Positions 43,978 through 61,949 of a DNA stretch of 64,000 nucleotides are shown here, piece by piece. The notes under the pieces are model-generated. The model was not told where the DNA came from. It did no database searches and saw only the letters and a program-made list of their open reading frames with translations. The position numbers and the translations under genes are program-made. The stretch is taken from the NCBI GenBank assembly GCA_002189035.1, contig NEEC01000019.1:868001-932000 (forward strand). Direction: 5' to 3'. Numbering within the stretch: the first letter of the stretch is position 1; every line of letters starts with the position of its first letter. Origin of the DNA: Utricularia gibba. Taxonomy: Eukaryota; Plantae; Magnoliophyta.

Positions 43978-45315
43978 TCATACACCAGTATCCTGGTCCG
44001 GCGGCGGTTGAAGCCGTATCTCTTCCACAAGCGGCGGCGGGTTTTCACCCAGAGTGGGTTGTGACAGGGTGTGGGGTGTATCTCCTGTCATCGGTGGTGG
44101 TAAGAAATCCGGTGCGGGAAATGTTGGAGTAGGTTGTGTTAGGATGTGCGGTGTATCTCCTGCCACCGGTGGCGGTATGAATTCCGGCACGGGAAATGTT
44201 GGAGTCTCGATGGCAGGAGGGATGGATGTGGAAATGGGCGGAGGAAAAAAAATGATCGGAATTTGAGCTGCGGTTGGCGGTTGAAATGGCTCAAAAATAG
44301 GTGGCACTGGTATGGTTGCCGGTGAAGGTGGCGGTAAGAGGAAGACATCTGGCGGGGCAAGAGAAAACGCTGGAATTGGGGAAAGAACTAAGGGTGGGGA
44401 TATTCCCGTTGATTCAGGCGGCAATGATGGTAGCGGGAATCCGGTAGCCGGCGGTGATAAAGGAACTAATGGGGGTGGGTATATTATTGGAATTATCTCC
44501 GGGGATGGAGGGAATGGTAGCGGCGGCGCTAATGAGACCAGTGGCGGTGGTAGCGATGGAGGTAGAGGGATTGCTGCCGGCGGGGCTAATGAGACTAATG
44601 GCGATGGAAGCGATGGAGGTAGGGGAATTGCTGCCGGTGGCGCTAATGAGACCGGTGGGGATGGAAGTGATGGAGGTACAAGGATTCCTGCAGGCGGAGA
44701 AGGAATAGGGACAGGTACAGAAGCAGGTGCTGGCAAAAGAACCGGCGCCGGTGGTGGCGGCAATATAATCGGAGGTGGCGGTGACAGGGGTGTGACCGGT
44801 GGCTGCGGCAACGGAACTTGAGGTGGTGGTGACAGGAGAGTGACCGGCGGCAGCGGCAACGGAATTTGAGGTGGTGGTGACAGGAGAGTGACCGGCGGCG
44901 GCGGCAACGGAATTTGAGGTGGTGGTGACAGGAGAGTGACCGGCGTTGGCGGCAACGGAACTTGAGGTGGCGGCAGCAGTGGCACCAAAGGCGGTGGAAA
45001 CACTATTCCCGGTGGAGAAACCTGCACAAAAGGAGGCGGCCGAATGACCGGCGGCCGCGATGGCACCACCGGCGCACGAAAAGGGTTGCTCCTAGAGTTA
45101 ATCGAGAAGGGCCACCGACCACAAGTCTCAAACAAGTACAGATACAAAGGATCACAACTTGATCGCCGCCCACCGCCGCTTCCCACTCTCCCAGCACTTC
45201 TTTTCTCCCGCTCGTGATGTCGCCTCCGGTGGCCAGCACTCCGAGGACCCCCGGCGACAGTCGAAGCAAACACAAGAAACGCAAAGAAAGCAACCAACAT
45301 TGCAGCGCTCCTCAT
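43978..45315 (-). CDS. Secreted proline-rich / extensin-like protein, 445 aa, intronless
   Basis: Signal peptide MRSAAMLVAFFAFLVFASTVAG, a basic segment, a short CDPLYLYLFETCGRWPF motif, then a Pro-rich repetitive body with SPPP motifs. Confidence 0.8.
   Translation of the reverse strand: MRSAAMLVAFFAFLVFASTVAGGPRSAGHRRRHHEREKRSAGRVGSGGGRRSSCDPLYLYLFETCGRWPFSINSRSNPFRAPVVPSRPPVIRPPPFVQVSPPGIVFPPPLVPLLPPPQVPLPPTPVTLLSPPPQIPLPPPPVTLLSPPPQIPLPLPPVTLLSPPPQVPLPQPPVTPLSPPPPIILPPPPAPVLLPAPASVPVPIPSPPAGILVPPSLPSPPVSLAPPAAIPLPPSLPSPLVSLAPPAAIPLPPSLPPPLVSLAPPLPFPPSPEIIPIIYPPPLVPLSPPATGFPLPSLPPESTGISPPLVLSPIPAFSLAPPDVFLLPPPSPATIPVPPIFEPFQPPTAAQIPIIFFPPPISTSIPPAIETPTFPVPEFIPPPVAGDTPHILTQPTPTFPAPDFLPPPMTGDTPHTLSQPTLGENPPPLVEEIRLQPPPDQDTGV
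44520..44685. repeat. Coding tandem repeat, 57-nt (19-aa) unit, about 3 copies
   Basis: PPSLPSPPVSLAPPAAIPL repeated in the minus-strand ORF. Confidence 0.8.
44771..44964. repeat. Coding tandem repeat, 48-nt (16-aa) unit, 4 copies
   Basis: AGGTGGTGGTGACAGGAGAGTGACCGGCGGCAGCGGCAACGGAATTTG at 44821, 44869 and 44917, plus a diverged copy ending at 44820. Encodes VTLLSPPPQIPLPPPP. Confidence 0.88.
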
Positions 45316-47559: not shown

Positions 47560-48059
47560 CTAGTGAAGCAGCTCCTGAATCATCTGCTCAATCTGATCAT
47601 CATCAAGAGCACTGATCTGCTCTTCATTCTGGTAACCGCTGCTGGAGGAGCAACCGTTGTTTTCATCATCGATGTCAACAAGGGATGATGCACTGGCCCC
47701 CGCCTCAGCTGGTTTCTGAGCTAATTGCAGAGAAGCCAAGTGACACTTGTGCAGCTTCGCCAACAAGCTGGCGGACAAAAGAGAAGCTGGTGATTCTTGA
47801 GCGAAATTTGTCCGCGCTCTTGGACCGCACATTATCCGGGCAGCTTCATCGTAGGCTCTCGCCGCGTCCTCGGCAGTTTCGAACGTCCCCAGCCATATCC
47901 GCGTCTTCCTGAGAAGCGACAAAACAAAATTGAGAAACAGAGGCAAGTGAAATGGCGTGGGCTGAGTGCTGCATACAGCAAGGGGTGACGAATCTCGGAG
48001 ACCCATGAGCCCCAGTGGCGCTGGCGGACGCCGCGGTAGCGCTGGTGCGGTCTGGCCAT
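47560..48059 (-). CDS. AP2/ERF transcription factor, group V (ERF003/SHINE-related), 2 exons: 48059-47977, 47908-47560
   Basis: [28 protein letters not shown]|[35 protein letters not shown], then LLAKLHKC and a C-terminal [14 protein letters not shown]. 68-nt intron inside the AP2 domain. Confidence 0.93.
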
Positions 48060-48472
48060 CGGAGAAGAGAGTGAGTGAGTGAGTGAGGCGGAAGGCAGGG
48101 CAGGGGCGCAATGGAATTTATTCAAGCGCCAGAGGCGACGTTTTTCTGTTGGCATTAAATGAGATCCCATTAACTTCCTCTCGACTTGTCGGCGCGTGTG
48201 CGTCGTCGGTTGGGGTCCGGTCCTTTTTCTCAGACGTCATTCTGGATGAGTATTGCTGACTCTTTTAAATTCGGATTAAATATAATTAATTATTTTTTTA
48301 GAATAAAAAAGCATAAATTCAAATTAGAACAAATCTAATCTTGTATTTTGATTTTTTCTCTCTTATGTCGTAATTCATAAAATTTAATAATAAAGATAAT
48401 CAATGTTATCATATAGAAATAATCGAAAAAATCATGAATTTGCGATAAATCACAATTATAATTAACCCTAAA

Positions 48473-52145: not shown

Positions 52146-52719
52146 CACCACACTCCTCACGTTACACCGCCTGTTTCTCCCGCCGAGTCGGCCGAGAACC
52201 AACCGAATCCCGGCCAGCGCTGCGCCTTTGTATACAATCCGACAAAAAATAAAGCACTCCCCAATCCCCACCTCGTGTCTGAAACTGAATTATATATTGC
52301 AAGAAAAAGCCTTGGTAACCGTTGAGAGCGGCAGGATTAAGTGGCACGTGTCGCCTTTTTGCGAATTTAAAATCTTGAGTGGACTTTCCTTCTTTTTCTT
52401 GTGATTTAATTTTGGACCATTTATTTGAAATTCAAATTACCACAAACCCCCTTTTCCGTCCTCCGGCCTCCACCACTTTCTATTGAATTTAATCTTTTTA
52501 CCCACACCGACTTCCGACTTTTCAGTTTTATTACAAAAATAAAGAAAAAAATCCGTGAAATTTCGGGTTTATTAATAATTATGTTATTTTATTAAAATTT
52601 TACTCTCATAATATCTTTTTTATTCAATCTAGTTTTAATTCTTTTTTCTATATACTTTAAATACATATTCATAACACTTAACCATCAAATTTATAAAAAG
52701 AAAAGCAATACAATTCGTG

Positions 52720-53000
52720 TGAAAACAAAATTTTTGAAGTGATTATATTTAATTTTAACCATTGCATAATAAAATCAAAAATTCATATAATGTGATGAAT
52801 TTAAAAAATTATTAAATTTTTTGAATTTATGTTTTAATAATTAATAATAAATTCATTAAAATATTTTAATATTATTTTTATATATTTTAAAAATAAAATT
52901 TATGTCATAATATTAAATTATATAATAATTTAATACAATAAATTTTATAATAGATAATTTATTTTATTCCAGTTTATAATATTATATTATATTATACTAT
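52720..53000 (-). repeat. Dispersed AT-rich repeat family A, inverted copy (duplicated again at about 56950-57200)
   Basis: The reverse complement of TTTATGTCATAATATTAAATTATATAATAATTTAATACAATAAATTTTATAATAG matches the core of copies 2 and 3. Confidence 0.55.
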
Positions 53001-53715
53001 ATAACATTTTTATAATTTTAAACTGATTTCATTCAAAAATCAATTATATTCTATGTAATATGAATTGCAGATTCAAAATATAGAACCACTTTAATATATG
53101 TTTATCTGAATAAAATAATTTAAATATATCATTTATTAAACAATATCAAATCAATCTATTGTGTGGTATATAATATTTCTTTTGTTAAATTTTGATTTCT
53201 ATTGTTAAATAAATAATTATTTATTTATTCATTTATTTATATTTATGTAAATTGGGTTTTCGTTTGGCACGTGCTGGGGGTCACTAATCCACTTGGACGT
53301 TGAGACTTCAATTCAATCAGTAGCTTTTTGTGTGGGGAAACTTAAGAGTGAAGAAGCTAACGTCAACATAATTTGTATTATATTTTTTAAAAAAATAAGA
53401 ATAAATTAATTACAATACAAAAATGTGGATTTAGATATGAATGGAATATTCGGAAAAGGAGATGAGTGGAGGACATTCCTCAGCATCGAATATTCCAAAC
53501 TGTGCGTTACGTGTCCCATTCCTTCACGACTCGCTTTTAGTTTTTACCGTTCCTTTGCTAAAAAAAGGTGGGAAATATAATATCTTAAAATTATAGGTTT
53601 AATTTGAATTAAAGTAAATTAAATGATTAATTTGTCAATGAAAAAAAAAATCATCGTGGATTTGCAATTAATCATTCTTCCGCAATCATCTCTGCTAATC
53701 CTGTGTGATTAGTGC

Positions 53716-55693
53716 TTAATTAGCCGCAACGCTGGAAACGGGAGGCGTCTTGTAGGTGTACCATTTGGACAAGCCCAGAAACACGAGAAGATTCAGCAAG
53801 CTCAGCGCCGCCAGCGAATAGTAGTAGTAATCAAGGCGTCCCTGGTTCAAATCATCTCGGATCCATCCGGCATCCCCGCCCCGACCCGTCACACGCGTGA
53901 CGACGGTGACTATGAAGGTGCACAGGAAGTTCCCCATGGCCAGAGTTGTGAACCCGAGAGCCGAGCTTATGCTCCGCATCGAGTCTGGGGCCTGCTCGTA
54001 GAAGAACTCCAGCTGCCCGACCAGCACGAAGACCTCTGCGCACCCGAGTATGAAGTATTGGGGCACTTGCCAGAAGATGGATATGGGAGTTTTCTCCAAA
54101 TTATAGTAGTTGTGTTTTTTGACGTACTGCAGCCTGATGAACTCGAGCACGCCGGCGTAGACTACGGGGATGATGGAGATGAAGAGGCCGGCGCCCATCC
54201 GTTGGAGCTGCGTGAGGCCGTTTTTGTGGCCGGTGAGCCTGCTGGTCACAGGGACGACGATTGCGTCGTAGATGGGAGTGCAGATTATGACGCCCAGTGT
54301 GTTGAAGAAGGACAGGGAGGCTGCCGGGATTTGGAATTTCGTGTTTCCAATGCGCGCGTCCATGGCGAGACCTTGAAGCACGAAGAAGTTGTCGATTTGG
54401 CAGTAGACGCAGGCGAAGGTGATCCCCGTCGCCCAGATGGGAACCAAGCGTATCATGGCTTTCAGCTCCTCCACTTGAGTCACCGTACACAGCCGCCATG
54501 GATTACTGCGTGTCGCTCCTAGTTTTTCTTCTTCAAGCACCACAGCTGCCTTGTCGAAGAATCTGCAGGCGAGAAACAAAACAGAGCATCCCAGATCCAT
54601 AAATATTACAGAAAATTATGAGGACTCTGCATCTTCAGATAAGAAAAACAGACATACGAAAGGTCTTTGGTATGTGGAAGAAGCCTCCTGTTGCTTCCTT
54701 CGACATCAAGCGTTTCATGCAGTAAGCTGACATCTTCAGGAACTGGAACCCTGTACTTCCTCAATGACGCTACCAGCACCATACTAACTTGAGTCATGGA
54801 CTTCCATTCGGCTTCTGATATCGATAATATCGAGTTCCCAACACAAAAGGAGCAACCACAAGAATCATGAGAATGGCGGGTATCCCGAACCCCCATTGCC
54901 AATTAACATTCGTCTGCACCCAAACCAGAACTGTGCAAGCGACCATGGTGCCCACGTTTATCGAGAAGTATATCCAGTTAAAGAACGAGCTTCGACTCTC
55001 CATCTCGGCTCCATCGTTCTCGTCGAACTGGTCCGCCCCGAAGGACGCGATGCACGGATTGAGTCCGCCTTGTCCGAGCGCGATCACGTAAAGCGCAACG
55101 TAGAAAAACGTGGTCTGCATCCCGGTAGCACGGCAAAAGCCCGTCTCGGCTTCGCAGTCCGTCGGTTTGAGCCCCGGAATCGAGACGGACAGCACGAGTA
55201 ATACCATCCCCTGAACCAGAGCACGAAACTCATTACCAGACGGATGAATCGGATGCCCCCATGAATCAGCCAACTTACAAGGGCGTCGATGATCATAAAC
55301 ACGACTATGCTCCAGTATCTCCCGATGTATTCATCGGCCACGAACGCGCCGATCAGAGGAGTTATGTAACAGGTGCCGGTCCAATTTGTGACGCTTGTAG
55401 AAGCTCTGAAACTGCTCTGCCCGATCTTGTTCTTGAAGTAGACTACCAAATTACGGCCGATGCCGTCGAAGATCATTGCCTCGAAGAATGCATGCACTGA
55501 GTGAAAAAAAGAGAAAAACCCGAATTACAGAACAGTGAAAAACACAACACAGTTTCTTACTTTTCGGTCAACCACAAGCTGTTTTACCCAGAATGAAGGT
55601 GCAAGCCTTCGACGTCCCCGTTAAGCGCCTCTTCGCCGGGTTCCCCTGGAAATCCAATGTTCCATCTTTCGTATACAAATCCTCCTCAGACAT
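53716..55693 (-). CDS. NRT1/PTR family (NPF8/PTR-like) transporter, copy 1, 4 exons; apparent -1 frameshift at GG 54798-54799
   Basis: Starts MSEEDLYTKDGT. Contains GAFVADEYIGRY, FGADQFDE, FFNWIYFSINVG, WVQTNVNWQWGFGIP, NPWRLCTVTQVEELK and GQLEFFYEQAPDSMRS. The frame stops at KPNGSP where copy 2 reads KPNGSPMTQ. Confidence 0.85.
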
Positions 55694-56154
55694 GGCGCCG
55701 GCGACTCACCAACCGGAGATGTAATAACACTAGAAATACTGCAATAAGCTGCACGAGCGGGCGCACTATATAGACAGATATTTTAAAAAGTGAAATGCAT
55801 TTAAACCACAAATTTCCATATGGATAATGAGTTTTATTTCTTTTCTATCGCAATATGAAGGAATCTGGCGTACCCATGTGATACCTCCAAATTAATGAAC
55901 TCAATGGGTAGGTTGTAGGGCCTACTACGAAGGTGGATGATTCACAATTCTATTATACCGAGACCAGAATAAATCACGACATACTACCATTTAATATAGT
56001 GTGTGTGATAAATTTGGTCATCTATAACGTATTTTTTTATTTAAATGTATGTTTTCAACCTACCTATATGGTCCTGTGTTGGTTGAGTGCTGGCGTGTAA
56101 TATGGATATAAATTATTTCGGTATTCTCAAAACTATATTCAAAGGTTTTGTGTA

Positions 56155-56428
56155 GAAATGTGTTTGGTTCGTGGGTTAAAATTATTTAAGTTTATTATTA
56201 CATATGTTTCATATATTGATTTAAAAAAAAAGGTATTTAATATATTTAAGATGGACATACTTACACTCTCCCTCATGTTGGTTTATATAAATCTGTATCT
56301 ATGGGTTAATGATATATTTATTTAAACCTGTTGGATAAATTTATACTCAATAATAACATATATATCAAACATTGGTAAAAACTAAACATATGTATAAACT
56401 TGACTAAACCCACAAACCAAATGAGACC
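56155..56428. mobile_element. Degenerate Tourist-like MITE
   Basis: Inverted termini TGTTTGGTTCGTGGGTT (56161-56177) and AACCCACAAACCAAATG (56407-56423), an AT-rich non-coding interior, and TA outside both ends. It lies in a segment absent from the second duplication unit. Confidence 0.5.
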
Positions 56429-57986
56429 TACAGATTGAACAACGTGAACCATAATGAAAACACGCAAAATATGTAGATGAGCATCAAATGCAGCCACTGA
56501 TGACTTATATTCTTATTTTATTAGTTATTAATTATGAGTTATTTGTATAAATAGGACATAATAGATTTCCTTTATGTGTAAATACGAACCATCTTTCCAC
56601 TTTTATTGAACAATGATTTCCTTTAATGATTGCACATCAAACCTCCTTCAATAATTGCATAAACTAATATCCAGAAAAAAAAAACGAGTTGGATGACATA
56701 TAAAATTTAATAATAACTTCTTCCACTGTGTGACTCTTCAGTTTTATTACAAAAATGAAAAAAAAATCCATGAAATTTTGGATTTATTAATGACTATGTT
56801 ATTTTATTAAAAATTTACTCTCATAACAGTTTTTATTCAATATAATTTTAATTCTTTATATTCATAAAACTTACCTATCAAATTCACAAAAACAAATATT
56901 AATACAATTGGTATGTTATGTAAATATACTTTTTGAATTGTTTTTATTTAATTTTTAAAGATTATAATTTTTAATTCTTTGATATCAAAATTAAAAATTC
57001 AAATTATATGATTAATTTCACAAATTATTGAAATTCTGATTAAATAAAAATTAATTAATAATTATAATATTTATGTTCTATTTACGTTAAAATATATTTA
57101 TATCATAAATTTAAATTATATAATATTTTAATATAATAAACTTTAACATATATAAATATTGTATTAAATTTTATAATAAAATTTGATACTATTTTATAAA
57201 ATAATTTTATAATATTAAAATGATTATATTCATATAATTTAAACTCGATTTTATTCTATATAATTAGAATAAATTCTAAAACAGCTTAAATATATCATTA
57301 TCTAAATGAAATAATTCAGATATATCATTGATTAAATAATTTCAAATGCATCTATTGTTTCTTATTTACTATTTCTTTTTTCAATTATGATGTATATGTT
57401 TATTTATATTTGTAGATATTGGGGTTTTTGTTTGGCACATGCTGCGGGTCACTAATCCACTTGGACGCGGAGACTTCAATTCGCTTTTGTGTGGGGAAAA
57501 CTTAGGAGTGAAGAAGCTAACGCCAACATAATTTGATATTTTTTTTAAAAAAAAATTAATTAATTAAAATAAAAAATGTGGATTTAGCTATGAGATATTC
57601 GGGAAAGGAGATGAGTGGTGGACATTCCTCAGCATCGAATATTCCAACCTCTGCGTTACGTGTCCCATTTCCTTGAGACTCGCTTTTAGTTTCTACCCCT
57701 CCTTTGCTAAAAAGGTGGGAAATGTAATATCTTAAAATTATAGGTTTAATTTGAAATTAAATTTAAATTCATAATTAAATCTAAAAATATTTTTATTTGT
57801 GTTAAATATTTTTAAATAGAATTAAAATTATTGAGATTAATTATATTTATTATGAAAAATTGTTTCAAATTCATGATTAAATTATTATATATTGTCGGAA
57901 ATAAAGAAATTCATATTAATTATTTTTTTGATTTTTAATTAATAATAATTCGGTAATCATCTCTTCTAATCCTTTGTGATTAGTGC

Positions 57987-60123
57987 TTAATTAGGTGCAA
58001 CGCTGGAGGCGGGAGGCGTCTTGTAGGTGTACCATTTGGAAAAGCCCAGAAACACGACGAGATTCAGGAAGCTCAGCGCCGCCAGCGAATAGTAGTAGTA
58101 ATCAAGGCGTCCCTGGTTCAAATCATCCCGGATCCATCCGGCATCCCCGCCCCGACCCGTCACACGCGTGACGATGGTGACTATGAAGGTGCACAGGAAG
58201 TTCCCCATGGCCAGAGTGGTGAGCCCGAGAGCCGAGCATATGCTCCGCATCGAGTCGGGGGCCTGCTCGTAGAAGAACTCCAGCTGCCCGACCAGCACGA
58301 AGACCTCTGCGCACCCGAGTATGAAGTATTGGGGCACTTGCCAGAAGATGGATATGGGAGTTTTCTCCGAGTTATAGTAGTTGTGTTTTTTGACGAACTG
58401 CAGCCTGATGAACTCGAGGACTCCGGCGTAGACTACGGGGATGATGGAGATGAAGAGGCCGGCGCCCATCCGTTGGAGCTGCGTGAGGCCGTTCTTGTGG
58501 CCGGTGAGCCTGCTGGTTACAGGGACGACGATTGCGTCGTAGATGGGAGTGCAGATTATGACGCCCAGTGTGTTGAAGAAAGACAGGGAGGCCGCCGGGA
58601 TCTCGAATTTCGTGTTTCCAATGCGCGCGTCCATGGCGAGACCTTGAAGCACGAAGAAGTTGTCGATTTGGCAGTAGACGCAAGCGAAGGTGATCCCCGT
58701 CGCCCAGATGGGAACCAAGCGTATCATGGCTTTCAGCTCCTCCACTTGAGTCACTGTACACAGCCGCCATGGATTACTTCCTGTTTCTCCTGGTTTTTCT
58801 TCTTCAAGCACCACAGCGGCCTTGTCGAAGAATCTACAGGCGAGAGCATCGCAGAACTATAAGTATTGCAGAAAATTATGAGGACTTCAGATGTGAAAAA
58901 AAACATACGAAAGGTCTTTGGTATGTGGAAGAAGCCTCCTGTTGCTTCCTTCGACATCAAGCGTTTCATGCAGTAAGCTGACATCTTCAGGAACTGGAAC
59001 CCTGTACTTCCTCAATGACGCTACCAGCACCATACTAACTTGAGTCATGGGACTTCCATTCGGCTTCTGATATCGATAATATCGAGTTCCCAACACAAAA
59101 GGAGCAACCACAAGCATCATGAGAATGGCAGGGATCCCGAACCCCCATTGCCAATTAACATTCGTCTGCACCCAAACCAGAACTGTGCAAGCGACCATGG
59201 TGCCAACGTTCATGGAGAAGTACATCCAGTTAAAGAACGAGCTTCGACTCTTCTTCTCGGCTCCATCGTTCTCGTCGAACTGGTCCGCCCCGAAGGACGC
59301 GATGCACGGACGGTGTCCGCCTTGTCCGAGCGCGATCACGTAGAGTGCAACGTAGTAAAACGTTGTCTGCATCCCGGTAGCACGGCACAAGCCCGTCTCG
59401 GCTTCGCAGTCCGTCGGTTTAAGCCCCGGAATCGAGGCGGACAGCGCGAGTAATACCATCCCCTGAACCAGAGCACGAAACTCAGTACCAGATGGATGAA
59501 TCGGATGCCCCCATGAATCAGCCAACTTACAACGGCGCAGACGATCAGAGACACGATTATGCTCCAGTATCTCCCCATGTATTCATCGGCCACGAACGCG
59601 CCGATCAGAGGAGTAATGTAACAGGTGCCGGTCCAATTTGTGACGCTTGTAGAAGCTCTGAAACTGCTCTGCCCGATCTTGTTCTTGAAGTAGACTACCA
59701 AATTACGGTTGATGCCGTCGAAGACCATCTCATCGAAGCATGCATGCACTGAATGAAAAAGACAAAACTCAGAATTAGAGAAACAGTGAAAATTATGTTA
59801 AAATATATAATCTCATATAAAAAAATGAAATTAAAATAGTTTAGTATATAAGAATATACAAATAACAAGTAATCGAATCTAATCTTTTATATTGTGATTC
59901 ATATTTATTATGTACTTAAGCTTCACATTTGCACTTGCCACACCCATCCGATACTGAATTTCAACAGCACAGTTTCTTACTTCTCGGCTAACCACATGCA
60001 GCATGAAGCTGTTCTACCTAAAATGAAGGTGCAAGCCTTCCACGTCCCCGTTAACCGCCTCTTTGCTGGGTTGCCCTGGAAATCCAATGTTCCATCCTTC
60101 GTATACAAATCATTCTCAGACAT
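57987..60123 (-). CDS. NRT1/PTR family (NPF8/PTR-like) transporter, copy 2, 4 exons, intact frame
   Basis: Starts MSENDLYTKDGTLDFQGNPAKRRLTGTWKACTFIL. Has the same motifs as copy 1. The exons join in frame. Confidence 0.92.
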
Positions 60124-61949
60124 GGCGCCGGCGACTCACAAACCGGAGATGTAATAACACTAAAAAAACTGCAAGAAACTGCACGAACAGCGCACTACAT
60201 ATAGATAGATATTTAAAAAAATGAAATGCATTTAAACCACAAATTTCCATATGAGTATTGAGTTTTATTTCTTTTCTGTTTTCTAATTAAAGTCGCAATA
60301 TGAAGGAATCTGGCTTACCCATGTGACACCTCCAAATTAATGAAATCAATGGGTAGGTTGTTCGGCCTACTTCGAAGGTCGAAGATTCACTAGTCTCTTA
60401 TACCGACACTAAAATAAATCATGACATTTACCCTAATTCATCTAGAAATCTGACCATTTAATATAATATGAGTGATAAATTTGGTCATCTATAATGTATT
60501 TTTTTGTCCAAATATATATATTTTTTGTCTAAACCCTTGGTTAATCATGTGGATGAACATAGTTAATCAATATCTGATAAAAAAACGAGTCGGGTGACAT
60601 ATAAAATTATCAATCATTCTTATTATTTGTTTTATTTGCCTTTGATGTCATTTTTAATCATTTTTTATTATGTTTATTTTATTTTCATTAATTTTAATAA
60701 AAAAATCAATTCATATTATATTTTTTAACAAACGTATGAATGGATCCGGTGAACCGATTCATCTGGAATCGTCACAAAAACGATCCTGGTTATACATCAG
60801 AATTGAAAAGGTAGTTGTACGGTTGGCTAGATTTGTAAATGATTCGATATGTATGATGAATAAGAAATGATTATAGATTATGAAATCATGATCTAAAAAA
60901 AAATATAATAATTAATCTGGAAAACGAAACCCTCCACCACAAGCTAAATTGGAGAAAAAAGATTAAAAAAAGAACTATTTTTTTTTATTTTAGCATAATT
61001 AATTGCAGAATATACAATTTCTATTAAATAATCAATTCTGTCATTTTTTATTCCGCCAATAAGATACCCTTGTGAAAATAGCTTTTATTCTCTTCAAGGA
61101 AAATACATTTTTACCCCTATGTGGCGATTTATTTCAATGTTATTTTAAATTAAAAATTTGCACGCAAAAATTCATCCAGCCACTCAAATTTTTTATTATC
61201 ACGTATTTTTATATTATTAAAATATTAATTTCCGCGGAGCGTGTCTTTTGAATATATTTATTTTTATTAAAATAATTCAACGGTATTAAATGACGTCGTT
61301 GTGTATTTTAGGGTGACGTCGTCGCTATTTTTAGAAGATGTCATTCTTTTTATAGTAACGTAATTCAAAATAAGGGGAAGAGTAATGGTTGACCGCCGAC
61401 TTCTAAATCAGTAATTTGTTGAGGCATTAATTAAATCTTAGAAAATCAATATTAAAATTTACATTTAATTCATGATTTTGGATTAATTTGATTTAATCCA
61501 TTATAAAAATATTACGAAAATATTAATAATTATTTAAGTTTAATATTTATAAACTTGAGCATTTTTTTATAAAAATTATTGAGTTGATTTCAAAAAATCA
61601 TATGAATTCGGATTAATCGAATCGAATTTCATATTTTAAATTATTAATCGGAAAGTAGAAAATTTTTCTTAAAATAATAATATAATGTCAAATAATTTTG
61701 CTAAAAGATTGTTTTAAAATCAATTATTTATATTGGGAATAAATAAACATTTTTTATTTTGGAATTGTTAATTTGTTTTTGTAGGTATAGTTCATGGTCA
61801 TACCTTCGGCCCAGAATGAATAAGAAAGCTCATTAAGTGCAGTTCAGTAAGCCCAGAATTTACCAGGAGGCCCATAATATGCTAGGGCCCATTTATCTAA
61901 GCCACTCGGAAAGCCGAAATCGAACCTTGGGGTGTTTGAAGTTCCGGTG

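Follow-up and report, generated by a model that had tools for sequence, protein, structure and literature searches.

Do two tandem carrier genes of Utricularia gibba, both of which lack the E-x-x-E-R/K (ExxER/K) signature on transmembrane helix 1, still encode proton-driven peptide importers? The two genes, copy 1 and copy 2, are members of the POT/PTR/NPF family and lie on the minus strand of a 64,000-nucleotide stretch of contig NEEC01000019.1 (assembly GCA_002189035.1, positions 868,001 to 932,000). This whole stretch is called the window, and coordinates are given in its own numbering. An earlier reading made from the letters alone (the sequence-only reading) had proposed that both copies lost the motif with different residues and may form a lineage-specific, PTR-derived pair with a changed transport mode or substrate. 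Judged from their residues, the products of the pair are probably no longer proton-driven peptide importers. The explanation offered, in which moderate confidence is placed, is that the tandem copies represent a fast-evolving offshoot of the NPF8.1/PTR1 type, whose proteins would be carriers without canonical proton-coupled peptide symport and with different coupling and substrate.

Copy 2 (57987..60123) is an intact NPF8.1-type gene for 574 amino acids, spliced from four exons (60123..60018, 59748..59531, 59462..58909, and 58833..57987). Copy 1 (53716..55693) has the same four-exon layout (55693..55588, 55496..55279, 55210..54658, and 54562..53716), with all splice sites intact and one frameshift. 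GT/AG borders are canonical at every exon of both genes, and the two proteins are 93% identical. Database searches were run exon by exon, while the joined spliced model was used for local alignment, substitution rates, and trees. The Pfam PTR2 profile (PF00854) extends across the carrier body, which has the major facilitator superfamily (MFS) fold (copy 2, exon 3, E = 3.2e-46 and exon 4, E = 3.8e-53; copy 1, exon 4, E = 9.4e-53), and the best PDB matches of the exons are NRT1.1 and GTR1 structures. Both genes are accordingly POT/PTR/NPF members. A third gene copy was looked for within the 64-kb window and none was found.

After splicing, the helix-1 segment is ILVHAFFEAMIFDGIGRNLV in copy 1 and ILVHACFDEMVFDGINRNLV in copy 2, identical to the sequence-only reading, which had also placed the motif approximately right. 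The codons for H37 to D46 lie at 59717..59746 in copy 2 (HACFDEMVFD) and at 55465..55494 in copy 1 (HAFFEAMIFD), running from 59746 and 55494 downwards on the minus strand, in place of the canonical NECCERLAYY. An alignment of the exons, built on a scaffold protein from Klebsormidium, served as the query of a profile search that retrieved 112 full-length NPF8.1/8.2 proteins. All 112 of these nearest relatives have E..ER-LAYYG where copy 1 has ILVHAFFEAMIFDG and copy 2 has ILVHACFDEMVFDG, 97 of them reading GNECCERLA, and all exon-2-sized fragments that span the motif read NECCERLAYYG, so that the NPF8/PTR consensus assumed earlier is correct. Neither copy has E-x-x-E-[RK] on helix 1; copy 1 carries A-F-F-E-A and copy 2 A-C-F-D-E, different residues as had been claimed. 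The two tyrosines that follow the motif in proton-coupled oligopeptide symporters (ExxERFxYY) are also replaced in both copies (Y45F and Y46D), which confirms the Asp described at the YYG position. Asp at this position is not unique to the pair, as LAFDG is found there in P0076, an unrelated NPF representative of 581 amino acids.

Residues 37-46 are nearly all conserved in at least 97% of 99 canonical proteins, and nine of these ten are altered in each copy. The 15-residue segment that starts at residue 36 (36-50) deviates more than any other in the protein, with 13% identity to the consensus versus a mean conservation of 96% and an identity of 87% in the sister protein of Genlisea, a deviation far beyond chance. 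Several changes are common to both copies and predate the duplication (G36V, N37H, E38A, C40F, L43M, Y45F, Y46D, and the loss of R42). After the duplication, the copies came to differ at residues 39, 41, 42, 44, and 49; the Arg of residue 42, which holds the peptide carboxylate, is Glu in copy 2 and Ala in copy 1. Five of 15 residues differ here versus 39 of 573 overall (p = 0.0025), in line with the suggestion that helix 1 is still diverging, and the divergence is even stronger where helix 2 ends, with six differences among the nine residues 100-108.

With regard to family placement, the closest full-length matches to copy 2, at 61% identity, come from Lamiales (Andrographis, Genlisea, and Penstemon). 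A word search with exon 4 reached a maximum of 66% identity, all named top matches being NPF8.1, NPF8.2, or PTR1, and in an exhaustive search of representatives with the same exon, the single-stretch matches among the top-ranked ones listed did not exceed about 58%. No protein was found in these searches with the same helix 1, nor with an identity above 66% for exon 4 or 61% over the full length; the contigs of the nearest exon-4 fragments cover exon 4 and part of exon 3, and helix 1 falls outside them. A maximum-likelihood tree, obtained by a quick IQ-TREE search (LG+C20), places the pair inside the Lamiales NPF8.1 clade (Shimodaira-Hasegawa-like approximate likelihood-ratio test support, 98), adjoining Genlisea aurea (89), a position compatible with an origin in Lentibulariaceae, with the caveat that its branch is long and long branches are never placed with certainty. 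The stem of the pair measures 1.34 substitutions per site versus 0.20 for Genlisea and 0.10-0.25 for other Lamiales, that is, about six to seven times the Genlisea branch.

By tree and named best matches, the pair belongs to the NPF8 subfamily and is of the PTR1/PTR5 (NPF8.1/8.2) type; membership of NAXT/NPF2a or NPF7 was rejected on the same grounds. The clade that holds the pair is a Lamiales NPF8.1/8.2 clade and not one for which absence of the motif was already known. Within the reach of the databases, the view of a PTR-derived, lineage-specific pair is borne out, lineage-specific meaning here that nothing closer was found and that Genlisea is apparently the only close relative in the databases. 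The best representative match, P0007, was rejected as an orthologue. It is a mis-modelled, decayed NPF8-like gene of another plant genome (GCA_020496765.1, CM035621.1), annotated as a 467-amino-acid 'PTR2', with an in-frame stop in exon 2, the motif E..VR, a deletion in exon 3, and the middle of the annotated protein out of frame.

The nearest known system by sequence and tree is NPF8.1/NPF8.2 (AtPTR1/AtPTR5-type), the plasma-membrane di/tripeptide proton symporters. The pair shares with them the four-exon structure and intron phases, the N-terminal block YTKDGT..GNPA..TG.WKAC, GAFxAD, SFGADQFD, the FYxxxN block, and the helix-10 Glu with QLEFFY. It differs from them in having A..DE-MVFDG (copy 2) or A..EA-MIFDG (copy 1) instead of ExxER-LAYYG, Arg or Asn instead of the helix-4 Lys, and changes at 19% of the near-invariant sites. 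The coding sequences of Genlisea aurea and Andrographis paniculata NPF8.1 were rebuilt from their loci and translate exactly to the database proteins. Exons 1 and 2 measure 106 and 218 nt in both window copies, in Genlisea, and in Andrographis, and exon 3 measures 554 nt in the window gene model and in the Andrographis orthologue, with equal phases throughout. The Genlisea orthologue (KE534927.1, 2132-3520) has lost intron 3, which the window genes and Andrographis share, and encodes residues 109-571 in a single uninterrupted exon.

The statement that the rest of both proteins keeps PTR-like motifs holds in part. The Pfam PTR2 matches are strong, but of the 245 sites with a conservation of at least 97% across the 99 canonical NPF8.1/8.2 proteins, 47 are changed in copy 2 and 48 in copy 1, including the helix-4 Lys, compared with three in Genlisea. 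Outside helix 1, the changes at conserved sites are mostly conservative (L>I, V>I, S>A, and Y>F), with non-conservative exceptions that include K159R/N, I158H/L, W387C, R400S, and P528R. Derived changes at conserved sites number nine in copy 1 in addition to the frameshift site, W28S and K159N among them, and five in copy 2.

It might be supposed from this divergence that the two genes are relics, silent or without function, of a redundant, slowly decaying NPF8.1 duplicate, whose helix 1 reflects loss of function. A stem six to seven times as long as that of the sister, the 47-48 altered near-invariant sites, the premature stop in copy 1 as assembled, and the existence of a comparably decayed NPF8-like gene, with its exon 2 stop, in another plant genome are all points in its favor. 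However, copy 2 retains a frame of 574 codons over four exons with all splice sites intact, and between the copies the nonsynonymous rate (dN) is 0.033 and the synonymous rate (dS) 0.096, so that their ratio (omega) is 0.35, significantly below 1 (Fisher p = 7.6e-6), falling to 0.22 in the C-terminal half. The conservative character of most changes outside helix 1 is also contrary to simple decay. When the distances among four taxa are decomposed, the stem leading to the pair has a dN of about 0.20 versus 0.06 for Genlisea, and its omega is about 0.2, a value that is only rough, dS to Genlisea and Andrographis being saturated (proportion of synonymous differences, 0.67-0.73). Because omega between the copies is 0.35 and the stem dN is 0.20 versus 0.06, the lineage is taken to be accelerated about three-fold in protein change but not to be evolving neutrally, as far as these substitution patterns indicate.

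The only lesion in either gene is the loss of one base from a run of C in exon 3 of copy 1 (54794..54799, minus strand), where CC replaces the CCC of copy 2 and an in-frame TGA comes next. The loss at 54797-54799 yields NGSP followed by the stop and is the sole indel in the coding sequence of this copy, a pattern that fits a known type of assembly error. About two-thirds of the weight is given to an assembly artefact and one-third to a young pseudogene. Copy 2 is the safe functional candidate, and copy 1 would be its equivalent if the missing base is an assembly error. Taken with the constraint between the copies, these points leave the relic explanation unlikely.

Additional information comes from the substrate pocket. 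It was reported that the ExxER Arg of PepT2 binds the peptide C-terminus and Y61 the backbone, and that the peptide N-terminus is held by Glu of helix 10 and by Asn of helices 5 and 8 (PMC11265797). By alignment to GTR1, residue 41 of the pair corresponds to the second motif Glu and residue 42 to the motif Arg/Lys; D46 aligns with PepT1 Y31 and NRT1.1 L49, and residue 159 aligns with NRT1.1 K164, the helix-4 Lys of the canonical GGIKPC. The latter codon reads R159 in copy 2 (59310..59312, minus strand; GGHRPC) and N159 in copy 1 (55058..55060, minus strand; GGLNPC). Neither copy has the Lys; Arg leaves a salt bridge to the helix-10 Glu possible in copy 2, and with Asn the Lys of the salt bridge and of carboxylate binding is lost from copy 1. 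Several other pocket residues of peptide symporters are retained, namely the helix-10 Glu (E of GCAEVF, aligned with NRT1.1 E476), the helix-2 Tyr (Y of TCYITP, aligned with PepT1 Y64), and the helix-5 Asn (N of the YFSMNVG block, whose equivalence to PepT N171/N192 is taken from the conserved block and not from a separate alignment); the Glu and the Asn are those that bind the peptide N-terminus. It appears that the acidic half of the pocket was kept, while the basic half would have turned neutral or acidic in both copies.

The sequence of events that is envisaged begins before the tandem duplication, when an NPF8.1/PTR1-type di/tripeptide importer gene would have lost the helix-1 signature E-x-x-E-R-(L/F)-x-Y-Y. 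The first motif Glu would have become Ala, and the Arg that pairs with the glutamates and holds the carboxylate would have given way to Glu or Ala. Asp would have replaced the second Tyr, the residue that forms a hydrogen bond with the peptide backbone, and Arg or Asn the helix-4 Lys. The side of the pocket that receives the peptide amino group would have been retained through the Glu of helix 10, the Asn of helix 5, and the Tyr of helix 2, so that a basic patch became neutral or acidic within a 12-helix carrier body under apparent purifying selection. The proteins would still fold as MFS carriers, and canonical proton-coupled peptide symport was presumably lost, because the acidic half of the pocket remains while the basic half is neutral or acidic. 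Coupling may have become facilitative or may proceed via the new acids D41, E42, and D46, and the substrate may be free of carboxylate or positively charged.

On the other hand, the copies could still import peptides or a different nitrogen compound by proton coupling, which would have moved to the helix-1 acids D/E41, E42, and D46. Both copies still have an acid at one of the two positions held by glutamate in the motif and share a fixed new Asp. They also retain the Glu of helix 10, the Asn of helix 5, and the Tyr of helix 2, and electrogenic proton coupling that does not depend on ExxER is reported for NPF7 members (PMC12780319). However, the first Glu and the Arg are gone, and single mutants at such positions abolish accumulation by NPF2.11 and uptake by NRT1.1 (PMC4675897, PMC6288477). 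It has been found that E, E, and K/R are all needed for substrate accumulation by NPF2.11 (PMC4675897) and that the motif Glu pair and Lys/Arg are needed for nitrate uptake by NPF6.3 (PMC6288477). Moreover, with the carboxylate-binding Arg and Lys lost or altered, canonical peptide binding is unlikely (PMC11265797). Retained coupling of this kind is regarded as rather improbable.

The argument that motif loss means uncoupled transport, on which the sequence-only reading relied, stands only in part. The NAXT and NPF7 clades lack ExxER/K (PMC6288477, PMC12780319), and NAXT/NPF2a and NPF7 include passive nitrate/chloride efflux carriers and a proton/potassium-linked carrier (PMC6288477, PMC12780319); yet some NPF7 members show electrogenic coupling without ExxER, as noted above (PMC12780319). 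NAXT/NPF2a (NPF2.7) and NPF7 (NRT1.5/NPF7.3) resemble the pair in having no complete helix-1 charge motif, a functional analogy only. NPF2a and most NPF7 have no chargeable motif residues, whereas the pair has re-placed acidic ones, and all NPF7 lack the salt bridge between helices 4 and 10, whereas copy 2 may keep one as Arg-Glu. The remarkable character of the loss was likewise overstated. ExxER/K is absent in 38% of 2383 plant NPFs and in 22% of NPF8 (PMC6288477), and all NPF4 lack the full motif (PMC6288477). In that survey, which covered 42 plant genomes (Longo et al. 2018, PMC6288477), the 22% of NPF8 without a complete motif share both the subfamily of the pair and its kind of loss. None of the 112 nearest full-length relatives of the pair lacks the motif.

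Several points weigh against the view that the pair encodes carriers without canonical proton-coupled peptide symport. The absence of ExxER is no proof of uncoupling, since NPF4 and some NPF7 members import or couple without it (PMC6288477, PMC12780319), and helix 1 of the pair retains acidic residues that could carry protons. The pocket positions were taken from sequence alignment to solved relatives. Changes at 19% of the near-invariant sites also fit partial decay, copy 1 is frameshifted as assembled, and the saturation of outgroup dS leaves the stem omega rough.

The odd helix 1 is very unlikely to stem from a misplaced exon 1/2 junction or an overlooked exon, with a true mRNA that restores ExxER, and this explanation was rejected, because the exon lengths (106 and 218 nt) and phases equal those annotated in the Genlisea and Andrographis orthologues, each deviant residue falls in the alignment column of its counterpart in NECCERLAYYG, and the string E..E[RK] is absent from every frame of intron 1 in both copies, as is any such helix-1 motif from every frame of 53000-60400.

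The two duplication units lie at about 52516..56050 and 56732..60517, the first comprising the gene with flanks of about 1.2 kb on the 3′ side and about 0.36 kb on the 5′ side. The genic part (exons and introns 2-3) is 93.7% identical between the units, both flanks are only 75-82% identical, and the boundary of high identity falls just upstream of exon 2. Given this difference between genic part and flanks, gene conversion over the gene body may have kept the coding parts of both copies alike. The spacer between the units (56050-57400) is of low complexity and extremely AT-rich (about 23% G+C across 56001-58000). Two other open frames were observed on the minus strand. The first, of 445 amino acids (43978-45315), opens with a sequence that resembles a signal peptide, contains long proline-rich repeats (PPPQ[IV]PLP... 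/ SLPSP...), and is similar to an extensin-like or proline-rich wall protein; the second (47560-48170) contains an AP2/ERF-type DNA-binding segment (WLGTF.T.E.AA.AYD.AA) and is probably an ERF transcription factor gene.

Motif loss in plant NPFs is already well documented, and in this respect the pair is an incremental case that establishes no new principle. Particular to it would be an independent loss inside a PTR1/PTR5-type clade in which every retrieved relative keeps the motif, together with an apparent charge inversion and a near-complete rewrite of ten consecutive invariant residues, bracketed by a canonical sister gene. As a matter of routine, genes of the NPF8.1/PTR1 type receive the annotation of peptide transporters and enter gene-ontology enrichments under that label, an example being the enrichment of 'peptide transport' among trap-expressed tandem duplicates of Utricularia gibba, cited at second hand in a preprint (10.1101/2025.04.05.646448). 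For the present pair, a homology-based annotation as peptide transporters is probably wrong, since the carrier scaffold is kept while every residue known to serve the peptide carboxylate and proton coupling appears to be lost. The pair and its canonical Genlisea orthologue (three of 245 conserved sites changed, versus 47) offer a natural comparison for the helix-1 residues that set coupling and substrate charge preference. A more specific and doubtful proposal is that the charge-inverted pocket (Arg to Glu, Tyr to Asp, and Lys to Arg/Asn) turned a PTR1-type importer into a carrier of a different nitrogen compound or ion, probably a cationic or carboxylate-free one, and that the new gene was then tandemly duplicated and is still diverging in helices 1-2. 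If true, this would be a naturally evolved switch of specificity and coupling within an otherwise invariant NPF8.1 clade, possibly tied to nutrient uptake in the trap.

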